A stretch of DNA of 64,000 nucleotides from Phallusia mammillata. Lineage: Eukaryota. A program made the position numbers and the translations under genes. Positions 1,814 to 18,361 of the stretch are shown one piece after another. The stretch lies in NCBI GenBank assembly GCA_965637545.1, contig OZ281499.1, positions 19,406,001 through 19,470,000 of the forward strand, written 5' to 3'. The notes below the pieces were generated by a model. The model ran no database searches and was not told the DNA's origin. It worked only from the letters and a program-made list of their open reading frames with translations. How positions within the stretch are numbered: the stretch's first letter is position 1; the number at the start of each line of letters is the position of its first letter.

Positions 1814-2139
1814 TCTGTTTCATCTCGAATCGCAACCATACACAGAACGCACTGCAGGCATTTTTGCACCCTTGAGTCTAAAAATAAGAACAATTAAACA
1901 CCAAAGTATTTTAACTGACCAACGTTATTGGCGTCACTGAACGTTAACAACCACCGACGACAAACACGCTCCAAAGTTCCAAACCAAGTTGTTACGAGGT
2001 GACGTCACATGACGTTTGGACAATGTGACGAAATATCCGCAAGGTGTCAGTAATTTGAGATTTTAAACGTAAATGTTTGACTAATAACATCGATTTTCAT
2101 TCACGGTTGGCGCTCGTAGCGAGCGGACGCAATCAAGCA

Positions 2140-3533
2140 ATGGATAAAGGTCCAAGTTTTGCGCAAGTCACGCAACAAAAGGGTGGGGGCTATTTAAAGA
2201 GGCCCACCTGTCTAAGTTTTAAAACGAGAAATCAAAGTAAAAGAGATGATATTTTGAATATCATAGAAAAAGAGAGTTTCCCTGTCCAAAAACTGATTGG
2301 AATCTCAGAAAGGAAAGGAAACCTAGTCGACATAACATGCACAACAAGAAAAGCTGTTTTAGAACTGTTTGAAAAACTGGTTCAGGTAGACACAATTTAT
2401 TCGGTCCGACTCTACGAATCTGATAAGCTTAATGTGGCGGTAGGATGGGTGCCTATACCTTTCCCGAACGAAGAAATCAAAACAGAATTTCAAAAAAGAT
2501 TCGGTGAAGTGAAGAATATCCAGCACCGAAAAGATAAGAATGGTTTACTAACTGGAATGAGAATTGTTACGCTAGACAAAGCTGATGTGGAAAAAAATCC
2601 AATACCTAGTTACGTGACATTACATGGTTATGAGTTTTATTGTACATACAACGGCCAGCAAATAACCTGCAAATATTGCTCAGAAGTTGGACATAAACAG
2701 CAAGACTGCCCAAAAAGTATACAAGACTACCCAAAACTCTCAGAAACAAGCAAAAAAGGTAAACCAAGAAGGCAAGGATTGCACCGCTTCTGATAAGAAA
2801 CGAAACAACTTGGACGGCGCGGAGAAGATAAGGGCACCATTGACTCGAACGGGACAACAATAGATTTGGAAACCGTCCACACCCCAAGCGAAACAGCAGA
2901 AAAGGAGATAAGAAAACCCGAAACTAACTTGCCTGATGAACAGCTAATTAACGGATCGCTTTTGGAAAATAAAAATAGGTCATCAAGGAAACGGCACCAA
3001 CGAAGCCCAACCGAAGGAAACCTACATCAAGCGAAATCGATAAGTCTAAGTGAACTAAATATACCAATTTCCTGCCCGAAATGTAAAGAAGAGAGCTACG
3101 TAACAGAAAAAAATTCAACATTCTTCTGCTGGAAATGTTCATCGGAGTTCAACATTGCTGCATCGTGCTGCAACGAAATTGATAGATTTTTGGTCCCGGA
3201 TAGGGAGGTGAAAACTAACTGTGTCACATTCCACCACCCATGAGAAGGATGACGTGCTGCCACAAGTTTCAGCCGGAGTACCAAACAGATGAAAGAACTT
3301 TCGAATGCGTGGAATGCAGAAAGTATTCAATGTTTTGCATTTGTAAAACTGTTAACGCTATACCAAAACGGACAATGACTACTAACTGTGTGAATAATGC
3401 ATGCAAATATACGCTTGTCCACTGTAGCTGTGGGAAAATAACATCTCAGTTAATGGGACCTAACAACCCGTACTTGTGCGATTGTGGCTTTGAATATGAA
3501 TATGATATAGACATTTGTGTAGAACGTATTTAA
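2140..3533 (+). pseudogene. L1/Tx1 ORF1 (zinc knuckle; cysteine-rich C-terminal extension), disrupted
   Basis: CKYCSEVGHKQQDC (CX2CX4HX4C). ORF pieces 2077-2793 and 2866-3243 are in the same frame, separated by TGA TAA, and a frameshift near 3240 leads into 3240-3533. Confidence 0.8.
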
Positions 3534-6500
3534 ATGCCTCTCACTGTAATAACCTACAACGTAGCAGGGTTGCGAAACACTAGGAAACGGCGAAGCGTTT
3601 TTCATTTTTTGAGACAAAAAAAGTTCGATATAATGTGCCTACAAGAAACGCACTCATCTGCATGAAATCTCAAGCAATGGGAGTTAGAATGGGGCGGGGA
3701 AATTGTAGTTTCGCACGGCACAACAAAAAGTAAAGGAGTGGCGGTTTTGTTTTCCAAACACCTTTCCTACCTGAAACACGACGTGACTATTGATAACCAC
3801 GGGCGTTATATAATCATTGAGCTGGAAATAAATGACCAGCAGCGCATAACGCTGTGCAATCTCTACGGGCCTAACCAGGACAACCCGCAATTCTACGAAA
3901 ACGTCTTTCGGGTTGTAGCTGATAAAAGCGCTAAAAGCGGAACCGAAAATATGGTTTTGGTTGGTGATTTTAACTGCGTACTCAATGACGAGCTAGACAA
4001 GACAGGAGGTAGAGCAATGCACACTAACCAACGCGCAAAAACTACCATCTTACAAGCTATGGAAAACCTTGAATTATATGAGGTTTTTCGTATCAAACAT
4101 CCAAAAGCGAAACATTACACACGGCTAGTAGGCTCGATTTTGTGCTTGTCACAAACGAACTACTAAACAAGACAACCCATATTCAAATTGACCCAAGCAC
4201 GCAATCGGACCACAGTATTGTTAAACTTACACTTAACCTTGATAAAATACCCAGGGGTAGAGGCTACTGGAAATTCAATACATCCTTATTAGAAGACCGG
4301 AAATTTGTAGAAAATACCAAAAAATGGATCGCTGAATTCATCAAAAATAATGACAACGGGGAAGTGTTTCCGCAAATCCTGTGGGAAGCACTAAAATGCA
4401 ATCTTCGCGGTTGCGTTATAAAGTATGCAAGTGAAAAGAAACGAAAAGCTAAAGCAAAACAGACAGAGCTGGAAAATATACTTAATGAAATGCGAAAATT
4501 ACCCGAACCCCATGATGAGCGCACAACCAGCGAAATCGCAGCTACACAAGAAAAATATGATGATATTATTGAAAGGCATACCAAAAGCGCAATAATACGA
4601 AGTAGAGCGCGATGGGCTGAATATGGAGGTAAAAATAATGCATACTTTCTAAACCTCGAAAAACGGAGAAATGGAAAGAAAACTTCGAAGATAGAAACGG
4701 ACCAAAAGACAATTTTACGCACCCTTCAAGAGTATTTTGAAACGTTGTTCAGCGCGAACAAACACCCGTTGTGCACCACCAGCGAAATATACGATTATAT
4801 TAATAATATAGCGTGCCCAACACTGTACGAGGAAAAAGCGCGTATGTGTAAGGGAAAATTGCCCTCAGGACAATGAAAAATAACAAATTCCCGGGACTAG
4901 ACGGTTTGCCAGCGGAATTTTACAAAGCGTTCTGGGAAGAATTAAAACAGTTACTGGTTAGCGCACTCAACAACGCATTCGAGACAGGATCTTTTGGTGG
5001 ACAAATGGCTTGGGGTGTAGTAACCTTAATTCCTAAACAAGAAAAAGATGTCCTATACGCGGAAAACTATCGTCCGATAACTTTACTGAACGCTGACTAT
5101 AAGATAGCAGCCAAAACAATCAATAGCCGTATCAAAAATGTGCTTCCGACAATCATCGCCCCCGAACAGACGGGCTTTGTCAAGGGAAGATACATAGGAG
5201 ATAACATAAGAACGCTTTTTAATATTCGGGATTACGTTGCCGAGCAAGGAACTTCGGGGGCCTTTTTGTTTATAGATATTTGTAAAGCGTTCGACTCTGT
5301 GAATTGGGACTTTCTTAATGCAGCGTGCTCAAAATTTGGTTTTGGAAACGACTTGTGCAGGTGGATAAAAACGTTTTATGCGGGCTCGAAATGCTTGATT
5401 ATAAATAATAACCACATGCCAAATCCTATCAGGGTTGAAAGGGGTGTTCGTCAAGGTGACCCGCTGTCCCCTTCGCTTTTTGTACTCGCAATAGAATTTC
5501 TAGCCTTGGCAATTAAAAGGAACAAAAACGTGAAAGGAATCAGTATAGGAAAACAGGAAGTAAAAATTTCGCTATTTGCTGACGACGCCTTACTTTTTCT
5601 AGATGGGTCGGAAAGTAGCTTTCGCGCAGCATTTGATGAGGCAAATGTATTTGGTATGCACACTGGCTGCAATATAAATCTCGCAAAATCAAGTGCAATG
5701 CACATAGGCAAGGTAGAGACAAACCCAAAATACTACCTGAAATCAGAAGGTTTAACCTGGCCTAATACTTTCGTTAAGTACCTCGGAGTTAAAATTCCTA
5801 CCACCAGATGCAGTGGTAACCTGTTTACACTAAACTTTGAATCTGTAAGTAAGGAAATTCAAGCTGTAACAAAACCTTGGTTGGCAAGGTCACTTTCCCT
5901 ATTGGGTCGAGTGATTATTATCAAAACGTTGGCGATACCCAAGCTACTTTACAAGCTAAGTGTTTTGCCTGTAAATATACCTCGACCGTTTTTAAAAGAA
6001 ATTAAAAGAAAACTTTTCACCTTTTTATGGGGCTCAAACTGGGAGAGAGTAGCAAGGAACAAACTGTGCTGTAAAATTGAAGAGGGAGGGATAAATATGA
6101 TAGACGTGGAAGCCTACGTCGATACTGCTTACGTCTCGCTTTGGAAAAGCATCGAAACGAATATTACTTCTATACATACCATGATATGCATCGCAGCCAC
6201 CAATCTAAAACCAACCCATAAACAAGTTAAAAAACTAACACCCCTCAGGACGTTTTGGTCATCGGTCGACCTTTGGAAAGATTGCGTAACCCAGTTTTGG
6301 CAGCAGCCCACTGTTTACAACAACTGCATGTGGTTAAATAGAAGTGTATTGTTCAAACGAAAACCAATCGCCTACGAGAATTTCGTTAACGCTGGGATAC
6401 TTGAATACCACCAAATTATTGACAAAAAATCGGAATATCAAACTTTCAATAAACTTTGCGAAATTTACGATTTGGTAAACAACAGTAAAAATCATTCTGA

Positions 6501-7154
6501 CTACCAGTGTCTAATCGCGGCTATTCCCACTACATGGGAAACACACACCTCAAGTAAAATTTACAGACAAACTTCCACTGAGCGGCCGACCAAGCAAGAA
6601 AATAAATGGGAGGAGATTTTACAATGGGAACCGCTCACCACTGAAAAATGGGGAGAAATGTACAAAATCTATACGATTGCACAGTGGAAACAAAACTACG
6701 CTCCTTCCAAATTAAGTTTAGTCCTAGGGCTATTGTTCTAAACGATACCCTTTATGGCTTCGGGATTGCTGATGCTGATGAGTGCACTTTTTGCGGCGTG
6801 TGCAAAGAAACTATGTTACATTTATGTTGTGAATGTGTATGTGTACAGGCATACTGAGAAAATGTTAGTTCATGAATCGACAGTGTTCTAGGCTACCGAA
6901 TCGTTTTAAATAATGGTATAAAAACGTTTGGACTTCATAATGAAAAATTTGATCAATATTTTCTGAAACTTGTGAATTGCATGCTTTTAAATGCCAGATT
7001 TGTCATCTACAGATGTAATATACAAAAACTAAAACCAAGAGTAGACATGTTTGTGTACCAAGTGAAACGTTGCCAATGTAACGAAAAAATCATAGCAGTG
7101 AAAAATGATACTCTGTCTAAGTATAAATTAAAGTGGAATGCGCACTTGCGTTAA
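3534..7154 (+). pseudogene. L1/Tx1 ORF2 (AP endonuclease + reverse transcriptase + C-terminal zinc finger), disrupted
   Basis: Starts MPLTVITYNVAGLRN...CLQETH; NLYGPN; VGDFN; SDHS; LIPK..NYRPITLLNADYKI; FIDICKAFDSV; RGVRQGDPLSPSLF; LFADD; CTFCGVCKETMLHL. Several stops and frameshifts. Confidence 0.92.
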
Positions 7155-13100: not shown

Positions 13101-15176
13101 CCTGTACTGTTTTAGAATTTCACCACAATGTTACACCAGTTTTTTCCAAATTTATTGGCTTGGCTTAAAACTCTTTAGGATTTAACCAGCGAGAATTTGC
13201 ATGAATTCGTGACTTTTATGTCGCAAACAGAGCCTAATGTTCTGTGGGAAGTCGTTTGCGGTTTGCAGTATCGCGGGGTATCGAGGCAGTTATGTAATTT
13301 GCTTGCACGATTGTACTGTTGTTGTTTATAACAAGAACTGAGGACTTTGCGCACAATACTTACATCAACAGGCACTTTATAACGACGTTGAGTGATAAAC
13401 ATGTTATGTTTGCAGTTAAACTGGGTAAACTGACTTGAGTCGCCCTTTGAGTTAGGTACAAATCAAATTTTGACTTTAGTGTAAAAAGCAAGCGCCTAAA
13501 AGTGTGTTAAAATACTGAACATGCGTTTTGTCACCAGGCAGCATATTTAACAAATATTGTTGTTAAACTGGTGTAATGCTAAAAATACCAGTAGTTTGAA
13601 AAGAACTTGTAACTTTGCTGACGTTTTGCCCACCAGAACTGTAGGGCTTCTTCAGAGCATTGAAGTGGAATATTCGAACACACAAGCAAAAACACACAAG
13701 AGCAGTGGAATATGATAAAATTACCACATTCTTATTTGTTAAATTTTGCTTATTATTGAAGAGGTTGTCAACTCATAAAGATTTTGTCAGTATAAGTCAA
13801 CTCAGATTGGCAGAAGTAACTAAAATATGCTTTTGGAATAATAGAACTGCTTGAGGGAGCTAGATAACGCCATTAGAAGTCGATGTTCGTTAATATGTAA
13901 CAAAGTCAACGTTGTCTGGCATTGTCCCAATGAAAAATCCCTACGTGGTAAAAAGGTAGCTAGTGGGCTTTAACAGTATACGAAAGCAGAACCTTGTCAG
14001 TCGATTACCTCATTGCGTCAACAGTTTGTTTGCATAGTTTCCTGCCTTTTAAACAGACCCAGAGCAAAGGTTCATTGCTGTCAGGCTAAGCTGTTCCGCT
14101 CTATGTGGAATTAGAGGCGATGGGTGCTTGTGCAAGGGTGTACCTTTTTTAGTTTCTTTTTAGTTTGTGTAGTTATTGAATGATGTATGTTTTTTAGATC
14201 AAAATAGGTACAAATGGAAGCACCCAATGTAGTAATTAATACTGTTTATACGCAATTAAGCGTGGAGAGTGAAAGCAGCAACACTGCGGGTAAGAGTCAA
14301 CAAATGCAAAACATAACTAAATAAGCAAAAGAAGTCATGTAGCTTCTGTATTAAGTTTAATATACTATTAGTTAAGAAGTAAAGAGTGCACATTGTATAA
14401 CTTGAATACTCTAACAGCACAGTTTGGTTAATCCATAATTTGCACGAGTAATCCATCACTTACAGCAGGGGTGCTTAATTATAGCATGATGAATTAATGA
14501 ACAATTACACTTTTAAAAGTATAATATGTCAATTTTATTATATTATGCAGGTTCAAGCTATACGAGCAAAAAAGCTTAAGGGCCACACTAACTTAAATTT
14601 GTTGTAAATTAACTAATTTTGTCATATAGCAACGTCTATGACTAAAAGCAATATTGGGGTTTAAACAGAAAATTGCGCAATCTGACTCTACTAAAAATAA
14701 CTGAACACGACTTTGAAGAATACGTCTGCCCAAAACAACTAGAGACAGCGTTCGTAAACGATAGACTAACGTTACAATTAACGTGGAAGTGAACGTAGGT
14801 AAGAACGTCTCTAGTCTTATTGTCAGTGTAACTGTCTGTTCTTGCTACTCCTTTTAGGTTTATTAAACGCGAATATATAGTCAAGTGACCACGTCGAACT
14901 ATAATTCGGGGCAAAGTGTCGCTCCAAACCAAACAATAAAAGTGGGGTTAAGATAAAGTTTTATGATGGCGAAACTGTTAGGGCGTAAGGTTTTACAACT
15001 AGTAAACGCGAGACAGGTAAACTTTTAAAGTAAACATGAAATTACTAAAGTGTCTGATGTGCCGTAAAACTAAATTACACACAGAATAACAAACACAAAA
15101 ATGTAAGTCCGGCTGCTTCCAACTAACACCACATTACCAAAATAATACCCGTGAATTATTAACGCATCTTTTTCAC

Positions 15177-17780
15177 ATGACAGGAACTTCGGCGGGTCAT
15201 GTACAAAACCACATGTATTCTATCAACAATGTTGGTAAGGTGACCCCTCGTTTCATCGAGTGCGAATCTTACCTGGATGCAAAACATCATCTGAGGGAGA
15301 AAGACGTATCGGTACTCCACCTCCAGGGGATTCCCGGATCAGGAAAGTCTTCGATTGTCCGAAAATTAGCTGAAGATTTTCCGTACAGCGCCGAAAGGGT
15401 GTGCGTGAAATGGCATATCGAATGCAACAATGTAAACCATGACATAAAAACACAACTGAAGAAACTTCTGGATCAAATGGCACACCATGAAATGTTGTTA
15501 CGAACGAATGAAGCTGTTTTAAAATGTTCAGTTGATAATTTAATGGCTGGCAGATGCCAACAGTATGTTGATGTTCTTGTTTCTTCCAATCTTTCAACTC
15601 TTATTATCATTGAAGATCCAGGAAAAGATGACAAAACTTTCCTCTGTGATTTTATTACGTGCATCGACAAAATTCAAGTCAGTGAGAACAGAAAGTTTCA
15701 CGTTTATGTAACTTCAAAATCCAAGAAAATTTGCGACTTTCCTAATTCAACCTGTTTTGCTAGGAAACAGATCGGCGGCCTCACCATAACAGAAGGCCTG
15801 AAACTGTTGGAAGTAACGGAATTGGATGGTGACCAGGAGAAAGAGGCCGCTACACAAATTATCCGAAAGTTAAGTGGATCTCCGTTGGGATTAATAGCTG
15901 TCAAAGCCGCAAAAAAGTTTTCTCTTAGCTTTAAAGGTTACCTTGAGCATTTAGAAGATGACAGTCTTATCCACAAAATCATTCAACGAGAAGAACAAAA
16001 TCTTGAAAACCCTCCTCATCTTCACAAAGCAATATTGATTCTTTTGGAGCCCAATAGTGATAGCCCGAAAGCCTTGAAACAATGGAAAGCAATCGCGTCG
16101 CTTTCACTCATTCACCATGGCAACATACCACAACAGCTCATAGGAAGAGTCATGCAGCACTTAAGAATGAACGAAGAAAGCACTAAAGAATGCAGCATGC
16201 AAAACAAGGCAGATTCCGATGATTTTATTGACAAGTTCAATGATTACGGATTGTGCGAAGTGACAGGTCGGGAATATATGGAAAGAAAACTCACATTTCA
16301 TGAGGTGGTTTTAACTGCTGTGAGACTTTATCTGAAAGGAACAGAAGAAATGGTTACTGCTGAGCACATAATGACTCTATGCTTGGCCAGCATTGTACAT
16401 AAGGATTTAAGGAAACCTCAAATTCATGAGTTTATGACATCCATGTTGCCACATATACGCGCCTTGTTGAAGCGGCAAGTTTGTTCCCGAGACCTTTTCT
16501 TGCAATTCTGTCGTGCTCATCTTTACGAGGTTTTCGGAGCAGTTACAAGAAAGCAATTTGCAGGTGATGATAACCTAAAGGAAGCTGAGACGCAACTGAC
16601 AAAGTCCGTCGAGATTTGGTTTGAAACAATACGTTCCATAAACAACAGCAACATTTCCCACGATACAGCTCTTGAACCATTAGCAGAAGAAACTTTGAAA
16701 GCCCGGGCAAAACGCATTGTAGATGAATGCGTTCAGGCAGGACAAAAGCTGCGAGACAGCAATAATTTCGACATCGAGAAATACATCAGTGTTGTTTTGC
16801 AACTAAAACCGAGTGAAATACGCCACTACTTTCAACAGTCTAGCCCAGAAGATGAAACTTTTTTTGAAGAAATTGTTGACTGTAGGATATCCGTTCACCC
16901 CTTGAAGCTATATGAGTTAAGACACAAGCACGAGGGTCTGTTTCTTGCAAGAAACAAGCTGTACGAAACTTACCTTGCGGAAAGAATAGCGTCAGTCCTT
17001 CATACCATGAGCGGGCTCATTAAGTCATACCACGGTGCTGAGGCGTTGGAGGTTAGACCTCGTTTCAAACTGTTTGCAACAATTGGTTTGAAAATTTGTG
17101 AAGAAGTGCAGAGACGGTATGAGTTTGCTCCAATATTCATACGTCTAACTGCTCATCGGTTGATCCGCATAAAATTAAAGAGTCTGACCCGTCTGCATAC
17201 TGATAATCGCCGTGAAATCCTGGTTGAAACAAAAACCTTTATTCTTGAAAATCTTATGGGAGAAATCAATCGTCAAACTTTGGTCTTCGAGCACGGTATG
17301 TCAAAAGTGATTGATAAAGATGCTTTTGATTGCCTAAAACACGAATCTTCCGTCGTACGCATCAATGCAAAAGTCGTGTCTCTTGGTCCTGGTGATCACA
17401 TTAACATCAACGAAGCTGACGCAGCGTGCGACGAACTCTACACAAAGGCCACCGACAATAAAGAATGGGAAATCTCTCCAAAGTGCCTTGTGTACTGTGG
17501 AAAGTACTGGGCCTCTCGAGGCCAATATTCCAAAGCTATAGATCATTTTGATAAGGCCCTGCGCTTTATAGATTTTCAAGGTCGAACCGAGACCTCAAGG
17601 TCGTATCCATGGGCTTGCTTTAACCATGCAAGGGCAGTTGTACGTGGCAGGCTGGCGAATCGTGCGGCAAGAAGCAAAACTCTTTGTGAAAGGGTTCTGG
17701 AAAATCGGAGATCTATATCACGAAAGCTTGTAGAAAACATTGAAACTCTGCTTCCAGAGTTGGTAAATTTGTCAAGCTAG
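15177..17780 (+). CDS. STAND P-loop NTPase (NB-ARC/AP-ATPase-like) with C-terminal TPR-like repeats; NLR-like protein, probably one giant terminal exon
   Basis: Intact 867-aa ORF. Walker A GIPGSGKS, Walker B TLIIIED, sensor-1-like VYVTSK, GLTITEGLKLL, GSPLGL (GLPL-like), TFHEVVL (MHD-like), and TPR-like LVYCGKYWASRGQYSKAIDHFDKAL / YPWACFNHARAVVRG. A possible splice acceptor ttttcacatgacag| lies at 15183. Confidence 0.85.
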   Translation: MTGTSAGHVQNHMYSINNVGKVTPRFIECESYLDAKHHLREKDVSVLHLQGIPGSGKSSIVRKLAEDFPYSAERVCVKWHIECNNVNHDIKTQLKKLLDQMAHHEMLLRTNEAVLKCSVDNLMAGRCQQYVDVLVSSNLSTLIIIEDPGKDDKTFLCDFITCIDKIQVSENRKFHVYVTSKSKKICDFPNSTCFARKQIGGLTITEGLKLLEVTELDGDQEKEAATQIIRKLSGSPLGLIAVKAAKKFSLSFKGYLEHLEDDSLIHKIIQREEQNLENPPHLHKAILILLEPNSDSPKALKQWKAIASLSLIHHGNIPQQLIGRVMQHLRMNEESTKECSMQNKADSDDFIDKFNDYGLCEVTGREYMERKLTFHEVVLTAVRLYLKGTEEMVTAEHIMTLCLASIVHKDLRKPQIHEFMTSMLPHIRALLKRQVCSRDLFLQFCRAHLYEVFGAVTRKQFAGDDNLKEAETQLTKSVEIWFETIRSINNSNISHDTALEPLAEETLKARAKRIVDECVQAGQKLRDSNNFDIEKYISVVLQLKPSEIRHYFQQSSPEDETFFEEIVDCRISVHPLKLYELRHKHEGLFLARNKLYETYLAERIASVLHTMSGLIKSYHGAEALEVRPRFKLFATIGLKICEEVQRRYEFAPIFIRLTAHRLIRIKLKSLTRLHTDNRREILVETKTFILENLMGEINRQTLVFEHGMSKVIDKDAFDCLKHESSVVRINAKVVSLGPGDHININEADAACDELYTKATDNKEWEISPKCLVYCGKYWASRGQYSKAIDHFDKALRFIDFQGRTETSRSYPWACFNHARAVVRGRLANRAARSKTLCERVLENRRSISRKLVENIETLLPELVNLSS

Positions 17781-18361
17781 ACATGGTTCCGTTTAGCACA
17801 AGGCGTGACCGTACTGAAAAAGATTGTAACATGGTCTAGTTAAATCGCGTATTGAGTGTAACGGTTAGCTTTGGCTTTGCTTGTCAGTAAGTCATCCTAA
17901 TTTTATTTTGAACAGAATTGTCAACATTAAAAGACTGCTGGCTTTGCCTATTAATTATTAACACTTGATTCAACAGGCGTTGGTTATAATTGTATTACGT
18001 TGATTTTTAGATATGAAACAACCAAGGGTGTAGTTCTGCTTGTTGTATGATTAGTAAATTTTTTTATTATTATTCGTGCAATCATTTATTTACCGAATTT
18101 AGCTGTGACTCCAAGCTATAGTCGTTTTGTGTCTCTTTGCTTTGCTGTAGTTCAAACACCATTGCGGCCGGCCATTTAAATCGCTTTTAAAGTGATGTGT
18201 TTGCTGCTGTCTGCACAGTTTGTAGTCAACCTTAAATATTTACTTGTGTGACATATAAAACTATCAATCATTCGTAAACTTGTGTTTAGTACGTTTTACC
18301 TTGATCATCGGTTGCTTCGCAGCAACCCGATCGATTTTTTGAAATGATGGTTGATGTGAAA

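Follow-up and report, generated by a model that had tools for sequence, protein, structure and literature searches.

Gene structure and transcript at the locus

The window analysed here, the whole stretch of 64,000 nucleotides (64 kb) from the ascidian Phallusia mammillata, harbours a gene for an NB-ARC-type STAND NTPase (signal transduction ATPase with numerous domains) on its forward strand. The most prominent part of this gene is an uninterrupted open reading frame (ORF) of 867 codons at positions 15177-17780, which is by far the longest in the window; the next one encodes a reverse transcriptase of 622 amino acids. A previous reading made without any database search (hereafter the sequence-only reading) had described it as an intact single-exon gene for an NB-ARC protein with tetratricopeptide repeats (TPR). 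The extent and integrity of the ORF were confirmed, while the single-exon structure had to be abandoned.

In sequencing run X1, a contig of 477 nt was found to join 14228-14288/9 to 15183/4-15598, thereby skipping 894 nt bordered by GT..AG. The resulting intron separates a small coding exon, directly followed by the donor GTAAGA at 14290, from a large second exon (Table 1). The G at the end of exon 1 and the GA at 15184-15185 form one glycine codon, and the reading frame through the splice junction was verified. The region 15184-17933 is covered by contigs of three runs with zero differences to the genome (15183-17933 for X1 alone). The runs were taken as RNA, which is a guess made because the X1 contig is spliced. 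The gene is expressed and spliced, and it consists of at least two coding exons.

The ATG at 15177 was ruled out as start codon, as it is located inside the polypyrimidine/AG acceptor of the spliced intron, which reads ...ctttttcacATGacag followed by GA, with the junction at 15183/15184. Most paralogues (L003-L009) show no ATG from the start of the open frame to the P-loop, and the 35 residues preceding the P-loop ('SIxNVGxVTPxFIE...') are conserved across paralogues at the protein level. A polypyrimidine-AG acceptor, always in phase 1, was identified ~8-13 codons 5' of this conserved block in all seven readable paralogue flanks, the comparison covering seven of the ten copies of the clade to which the window gene belongs. 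Since the paralogues mostly lack an ATG between the shared acceptor and the P-loop, the coding start was placed in an upstream mini-exon. Exon 1 displays an in-frame TAG at 14205-14207, followed by GTA CAA and the ATG at 14214; it was observed in the X1 contig from 14228 on, the ATG being read from the genomic sequence. Translation most likely starts at this ATG of the 25-codon mini-exon, and the full protein is most likely 890 amino acids long, with its first 25 residues coming from the mini-exon. All searches and structure predictions were made with the exon-2 ORF.

The cDNA-derived P. mammillata protein CAB3262187.1 (P0007) is 100% identical to another member of the family, paralogue L013 on contig C1 (846 residues), which by itself points to P. 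mammillata or an extremely close species as the source of the genome. Two small exons located just 5' of the large exon of L013 encode the first 38 residues of this protein, and the large exon is joined at the same glycine as in the window gene. The design with an upstream mini-exon is thus documented independently for a second family member.

An AG at 14196-14197, which ends a T-run (14190-14195) just 5' of the ATG, could represent a 5'-untranslated region (UTR) acceptor or a spliced-leader acceptor. Inside the ORF, 86 nt with GT..AG borders (15678-15763) are missing from a further X1 contig of 59 nt (depth 5.5), which would shift the frame, and a contig of 145 nt (depth 7.4) runs through this site unspliced. 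The skip is either a minor splice variant or noise of the splicing process.

Table 1. Coordinates of the gene and of the domains and motifs of its product (positions of the window; residues counted along the ORF)
Feature	Position	Strand	Description
ORF	15177-17780	+	867 amino acids, uninterrupted
Exon 1, coding part	14214-14289	+	ATG at 14214; 25 codons and first base of the split Gly codon
Phase-1 intron	14290-15183	+	894 nt, GT..AG, from the joint in the X1 contig
Exon 2, remaining coding sequence	15184-17780	+	865 codons and stop TAG at 17778-17780; ORF minus its first 7 bases
3' UTR	17781-17933 at least	+	X1 contig covering 15764-17933; ATTAAA at 17927-17932
NB-ARC domain	15285-15992	+	residues 37-272, Pfam PF00931
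Walker A GSGKS	15336-15350	+	residues 54-58
Walker B IIIED	15603-15617	+	residues 143-147
VTSK (sensor-1 position)	15708-15719	+	residues 178-181
GxP motif GSPLGL	15876-15893	+	residues 234-239
MHD-like FHEVV	16296-16310	+	residues 374-378
NBD-HD1-WHD-HD2 module	15216-16487	+	residues 14-437, predicted model against CED-4
TPR-like alpha-solenoid, presumed sensor	16356-17777	+	residues ~394-867, predicted fold

The NB-ARC-type module

Pfam analysis, one of the checks suggested by the sequence-only reading, identified an NB-ARC domain at residues 37-272 (39.6 bits against a cut-off of 23.5, E 4.5e-10). The five STAND motifs reported by that reading were all recovered in the announced order (Table 1), the first two being part of the longer stretches GIPGSGKS (residues 51-58) and LIIIED (residues 142-147). 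Across 16 members of the family, residues G51, G54, G56, K57, G234, P236, L237, G238, L239 and H375 are invariant, and D147 of Walker B is present in at least 90% of them. The sensor-1 position reads VTSK or ITSQ/N/H, where T179 and S180 are nearly invariant. With its Pfam score, its Walker and GxP motifs and the histidine of its winged-helix domain (WHD), the protein is assigned to the NB-ARC (AP-ATPase) clade of STAND NTPases.

NPHP3_N was the second match in Pfam (26.3 bits against a cut-off of 24.8), and NACHT remained far under its cut-off (12.5 against 26.7 bits). No leucine-rich repeat (LRR) was detected in Pfam, so the protein is not an NLR (nucleotide-binding and LRR receptor) in the strict animal sense of NACHT plus LRR. 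Neither CARD nor WD40 was detected in Pfam, which sets it apart from Apaf-1 orthologues. Death, CARD and TIR domains are all absent from the window protein, the N-terminus of which is made of the 25-residue mini-exon peptide and ~45 residues up to the P-loop.

An AlphaFold2 model of the full-length protein, obtained with the 16-sequence family alignment, reached a pLDDT of 86.9 and a pTM of 0.83. Residues 14-437 of this model are predicted to form a nucleotide-binding oligomerisation domain (NOD) composed of a nucleotide-binding domain (NBD), helical domain 1 (HD1), the WHD and helical domain 2 (HD2), with a fold like that of CED-4/Apaf-1. With VIA-align, they superposed on CED-4 (4m9s_A) with a Z score of 13.6 and a root mean square deviation (rmsd) of 4.4 for 370 aligned residues. 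The Z score for Apaf-1 was 13.2, and the module also superposes on plant resistosome NLRs and on ORC/Cdc6. The top Foldseek match was the archaeal TPR-sensor STAND 6mfv (1.7e-9), CED-4, Apaf-1, plant NLRs and Avs3 being listed as well (probability 1.00). Sequence searches of the PDB produced no significant match.

The resemblance to CED-4, Apaf-1 and Dark thus concerns the predicted NOD (Foldseek TM 0.64 on target for CED-4) together with the P-loop, Walker B, GxP and WHD histidine motifs. In contrast to these proteins, the window protein has no CARD and is predicted to carry a TPR-like solenoid in place of WD40 repeats (CED-4 having no sensor), its family is multi-copy, and sequence identity is ~15%. 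It is not an Apaf-1 orthologue.

The TPR-like C-terminal half

The C-terminal half (~470 residues) is predicted to be entirely helical. When it was refolded alone with 32 sequences, the model reached a pLDDT of 91.6 and a pTM of 0.91. An exhaustive structural comparison over 48,161 chains, for which the tool's note gives a chance level of about Z 13 for helical repeats, placed it closest to the eight-repeat TPR domain of LGN (Z 20.8, rmsd 3.5, 306/330 residues) and to that of Pins (Z 20.3), followed by Rap-family TPR receptors (Z 16-17; 16.8 for RapH), TTC7, TPR subunits of APC/C and Tom70. All top Foldseek matches of this half were TPR proteins, and in the model paired antiparallel helices build the right-handed superhelix by which TPR proteins are recognised.

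At the sequence level, a single weak TPR was detected at 17481-17564 (residues 769-796), with 17.6 bits against 27 for TPR_2 and 16.0 against 27.8 for TPR_1, and a designed consensus-TPR (CTPR) protein appeared in the PDB sequence search at E 0.013-0.019 only. Regarding the TPR-like repeats noted earlier, the predicted fold is indeed a TPR solenoid, while the sequence gives only this one sub-threshold motif. The combination of NB-ARC with a TPR-like sensor, in place of WD40 or LRR, is correct at the level of the predicted fold, the repeats having diverged past the TPR models of Pfam.

A gene family in this genome and across ascidians

Word-index protein searches with the single protein or with a profile returned six relatives only, and an exhaustive HMMER search was needed to reveal the family. 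It delivered 367 relatives at E <= 1e-3, 96 of them at E <= 1e-30, many matching end-to-end. About 16 family loci, 13 of which are open, were found in the present genome, in agreement with the expanded family postulated by the sequence-only reading; NB-ARC was recognized by Pfam at E <= 0.001 in 12 of the 16 members. Nine intact close copies and L002 form a ten-member clade. L002 (C6:19295282-19297864) is the closest paralogue of the window copy, with 72% amino acid identity, and contains one in-frame TGA. The remaining loci comprise a shattered copy on C3, L011, the intact L013 and three distant copies on C8.

Most loci are clustered. C6 holds four copies, where the window copy is ~118-130 kb away from the other three, and four copies are present within 30 kb on C2 (C2:29510444-29539885). 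Two copies are located on C3, and C8 has three within 12 kb plus two lone ones. On C2, L009 (-) and L007 (+) are arranged head to head at a distance of 5.5 kb, each with its own candidate exon 1 ~200 nt 5' of the large exon. Besides L002, one or two TAA stops were found in L011 (C8:11968690-11971302), and the locus C3:20699502-20702043 (L012/L014/L018) is one copy broken into three frames with several stops. These damaged paralogues fit a birth-and-death turnover.

The named relatives are all annotated as 'uncharacterized' and come from Ciona intestinalis, Clavelina lepadiformis, Styela clava and, more distantly, Branchiostoma floridae. The tunicate relatives (CAB3262187.1 of P. mammillata, LOC100185875 and LOC104265769 of Ciona, LOC143461914-6 of C. 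lepadiformis and LOC120345200 of S. clava) match over the full length with profile E values of 1e-291 to 1e-91, have ~850-950 amino acids and share the short N-terminus. They differ from the window copy in that the latter is 23-35% identical to them and sits in the separate ten-copy clade, and in that three Clavelina relatives bear an N-terminal TIR or Death domain. The two Ciona proteins LOC100185875 (P0014) and LOC104265769 (P0018) matched the family profile at 1e-205 and 1e-177, respectively. In Pfam, no NB-ARC was obtained for them at E <= 0.001, a sub-threshold NPHP3_N being their sole match. Such a divergence below detection may explain the published absence of the domain from tunicates and Ciona.

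A phylogeny of 65 near-full-length sequences was calculated with FastTree (SH-like supports, midpoint root). All ten close copies found in this genome fall into a single clade with an SH-like support of 100, the sister of which is a clade of 13 sequences from other assemblies. Of the remaining paralogues, L011 groups with Ciona LOC100185875, and L013 with Ciona LOC104265769 and Clavelina copies. This placement indicates that the window gene belongs to a lineage-specific expansion within an older family present across ascidians.

Outside this family, three other open frames of 432-641 amino acids reach the Pfam cut-off for NB-ARC with 25.6-27.5 bits (C3:15069603-15069953, C6:26799857-26800213 and C6:26817422-26817772). 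They may be other STAND genes of the same genome.

Selection

The ratio of non-synonymous to synonymous substitution rates (dN/dS), estimated according to Nei-Gojobori, was 0.20-0.25 for the closest paralogue pairs and 0.2-0.3 overall along the full length, with about equal values in the NBD, ARC/WH, mid-helical and C-terminal regions. The synonymous distance (dS) between the closest pairs ranged from 0.29 to saturation. The family is constrained over its whole length and the duplications are old. Both observations argue against the 'fast-evolving' locus of the sequence-only reading, the pairwise estimates leaving room for positive selection at single sites.

Uniform constraint is what could be expected from a scaffold or regulatory STAND with no immune role, either an NPHP3-like ciliary or cytoskeletal protein or a chaperone-type TPR adaptor, in which the P-loop would regulate the assembly of a housekeeping complex. 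The absence of dN/dS hot spots, the proximity of the TPR half to the scaffold proteins LGN/Pins and the order of a P-loop NTPase followed by TPRs, with NPHP3_N just over its cut-off in the window protein and alone in the Ciona members, all point in that direction. NPHP3-type genes are conserved, single-copy and ciliary. In contrast, NB-ARC clearly outscores NPHP3_N in the window protein and also prevails in most members, the family is multi-copy and clustered, with pseudogenised members and lineage-specific expansions, and the TIR- or Death-fused relatives point to immune or death signalling. A scaffold function is therefore considered rather unlikely.

Proposed function

The locus is best explained as an expressed gene for a cytosolic STAND NTPase of ~890 amino acids, which probably acts as a ligand-gated switch in the sensing of danger, pathogens or cell death. 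The protein combines a short domain-less N-terminus, an NB-ARC-type NOD with intact motifs and a predicted TPR-like solenoid of ~470 residues. Its likely mechanism can be modelled on Apaf-1/CED-4, on the NLRs of plants and on two TPR-STANDs, PH0952 and MalT. At rest, the P-loop and the histidine of the WHD would hold ADP, with the TPR sensor packed on the NOD. Binding of a ligand to the solenoid would release the autoinhibition, and the released protein would exchange ADP for ATP and oligomerise into a signalling hub. As Death, CARD and TIR domains are all missing, the output is assumed to be mediated by a partner that either the oligomer or the short N-terminus would recruit. NOD-sensor autoinhibition, inducer binding, nucleotide exchange and oligomerisation have been described for PH0952 and MalT (PMC6468293).

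The lineage-specific birth-and-death expansion under moderate purifying selection fits a gene for danger, pathogen or cell-death sensing. A role in immunity or cell death is suggested for the window protein; the immune function initially proposed for it is a plausible hypothesis, and allorecognition, proposed alongside, a putative one. The gene was found to be multi-copy, transcribed and spliced (X1), and the checks by Pfam and by an AlphaFold monomer returned NB-ARC above its cut-off and a predicted CED-4-like NOD with a TPR solenoid; nothing that the sequence-only reading had named as contradicting it was encountered. Its observation was largely right apart from the exon count, and its interpretation is partly supported.

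Several points weigh against the proposed sensing function. No 30-codon window exceeded a dN/dS of ~0.5 when four independent pairs were pooled, the TPR region included, so that diversifying selection left no sign there (site-level cases left aside); a receptor exposed to pathogens would be expected to give a stronger signal. The sensor-1 VTSK lacks, in the 16 members aligned, the conserved arginine of classic NB-ARC proteins ('TTR'-type, RNBS-B). The TPR identity rests on the predicted fold, the sequence models for TPR being under their cut-offs. Finally, no effector domain is present in the protein and no Death or TIR exon adjoins any family locus in the genome, so that the output step has to be assigned to a presumed partner.

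Comparison with known systems

According to published surveys, tunicates, which form the sister group of vertebrates, are devoid of Apaf-1, caspase-9 and even of the NB-ARC domain (PMC2246300, PMC10959488): no NB-ARC domain was detectable in Ciona (Zmasek et al., 2007; PMC2246300), and Apaf-1 was not found in any urochordate in a survey of 2023 (PMC10959488). Full-text literature searches on NB-ARC families of ascidians and tunicates retrieved nothing describing the present family. The locus and its relatives indicate that ascidians keep a sizeable and expressed NB-ARC-TPR family, some members of which are fused to TIR or Death domains in some species. It adds a chordate data point on animal STANDs whose sensor consists of TPR and not of LRR or WD40, and the gene set is testable in tractable embryos (Phallusia, Ciona) for comparative immunology and cell-death research.

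The reported absence of Apaf-1 and caspase-9 from urochordates (PMC10959488) raises the question whether the family, or its conserved branches, could be a cell-death platform, caspase-activating or other, that replaced the lost apoptosome, the window copy then being a duplicated variant rather than a pathogen sensor. This would agree with CED-4/Apaf-1 as the best structural match of the NOD, with the Death domains on Clavelina relatives and with purifying selection over the whole length. On the other hand, a CARD or Death domain is missing from the window protein and the surroundings of the family loci in the genome revealed no exon for one, ten paralogues in a genome-restricted clade are unusual for a core death adaptor, and the Death-fused Clavelina proteins sit in a distant outer clade. 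A death platform of this kind is judged unlikely, and the ligand-gated sensor is retained as the preferred explanation.

The architecture is not a new kind of system, since amphioxus, echinoderms, cnidarians, fungi and prokaryotes are already known to possess it. Zmasek et al. (2007; PMC2246300) described NB-ARC proteins with TPR instead of WD40 in amphioxus, sea urchin and Nematostella. The window protein shares its architecture class with these invertebrate Apaf-1-like proteins, and C3ZSR5 of B. floridae (P0090), which carries NB-ARC and DUF7779, matched the family profile at 1.1e-38. Unlike them, it has a short domain-less peptide where CARD, Death, DED or TIR domains are usual. Prokaryotic TPR-STANDs (PH0952, PDB 6mfv; MalT) and antiviral Avs proteins similarly display a NOD, an arm and a TPR sensor; the window protein differs by the absence of a DNA-binding or nuclease effector and by being encoded in a eukaryotic gene with a conserved spliceosomal intron. 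No match was obtained with the PADLOC defence models. The likeness to fungal NB-ARC-TPR NLRs (Dyrka et al., 2014; PMC4986451) is one of architecture and extends to multi-copy families with birth-and-death evolution. Some of the fungal proteins have only a short N-terminal signalling motif, whereas the window protein shows no sequence-level TPR_10/TPR_12 repeats, and neither an amyloid motif nor a partner gene was found for it.

N-terminal peptides

The mini-exon N-termini of the family comprise 25-60 residues and are beta-prone and rich in N, G, I and V. The exon-1 peptides considered include those of the window copy (14214-14288), L026:5244-5339, P0007:1-38, P0027:1-53 and P0014:1-53. They are unalignable across subfamilies, and several alternate hydrophobic residues with N and G (MQIG, VTIG, NIxxSVGNLV), as in 'NQMQIGSIERL' of the Phallusia L013 cDNA, 'NVTIGDGIQG' of Clavelina and 'PNVVINTVYTQLSVES' of the window copy. 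From this composition, the peptides could conceivably be short amyloid-type or RHIM-like signalling motifs, although this is regarded as very unlikely. If true, animal NB-ARC-TPR proteins would signal by templating a partner, as do fungal and bacterial NLRs, and the family might replace the apoptosome pathway lost by tunicates. Pfam searches with nine N-terminal peptides, aimed at RHIM and HET-s-type motifs, gave no match at E <= 10, and a search of the genome for partner genes with exon-1 peptides recovered only exon 1 of the family's own paralogues. An all-versus-all BLASTP of the translated 10-kb upstream regions of nine paralogues revealed no shared coding exon; the similarity observed was only that of recent duplicates at the nucleotide level, in all frames.

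Clusters of TIR exons related to the TIR domain of a Clavelina family member were observed at C4:1.78-2.13 Mb, C5:6.6-6.95 and 12.77-12.79 Mb, C6:25.596-25.608 Mb and C2:11.08-11.11 Mb, none of which adjoins an NB-ARC-TPR locus. Many exons of the C4 cluster contain stop codons.

Genomic surroundings and origin of the gene

A retroelement is located at 2077-6741 of the window, 7.5 kb upstream of the start codon 14214 and 8.4 kb from the ORF. It consists of a gag-like zinc-knuckle ORF, an ORF of 244 amino acids and the intact RVT_1 ORF of 622 amino acids mentioned above. Elsewhere in the genome, at least 12 further copies share 94-96% identity with it, which indicates a fairly young family, and many more copies were found at 72-80%. 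The sequence-only reading had placed the gene among young transposable elements. This holds for the one nearby retroelement only, and repeats of at least 40 nt are absent from both sides of the gene within 7-26 kb. Transposable elements do not enclose the gene.

Proximity to this element, a coding sequence that is nearly intronless in an intron-rich genome, stop codons in some copies and bacterial NB-ARC-TPR proteins as look-alikes in a protein language model could suggest that the family is foreign or transposon-borne, by recent bacterial or fungal transfer or as a retrogene, or that it is drifting to pseudogenes with no host function. This is extremely improbable. The spliceosomal intron has a conserved position and phase, common to the paralogues and the cDNA-derived protein, homologues are found across ascidians and in amphioxus, dN/dS is well under 1 over old duplications, and flanking repeats and PADLOC matches are missing. 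Horizontal transfer, a retrogene and a transposon origin were ruled out on three grounds, namely conservation of the intron, vertical distribution and purifying selection. A fragment of a related element is present near the other C6 paralogues (C6:19309155-19309562).

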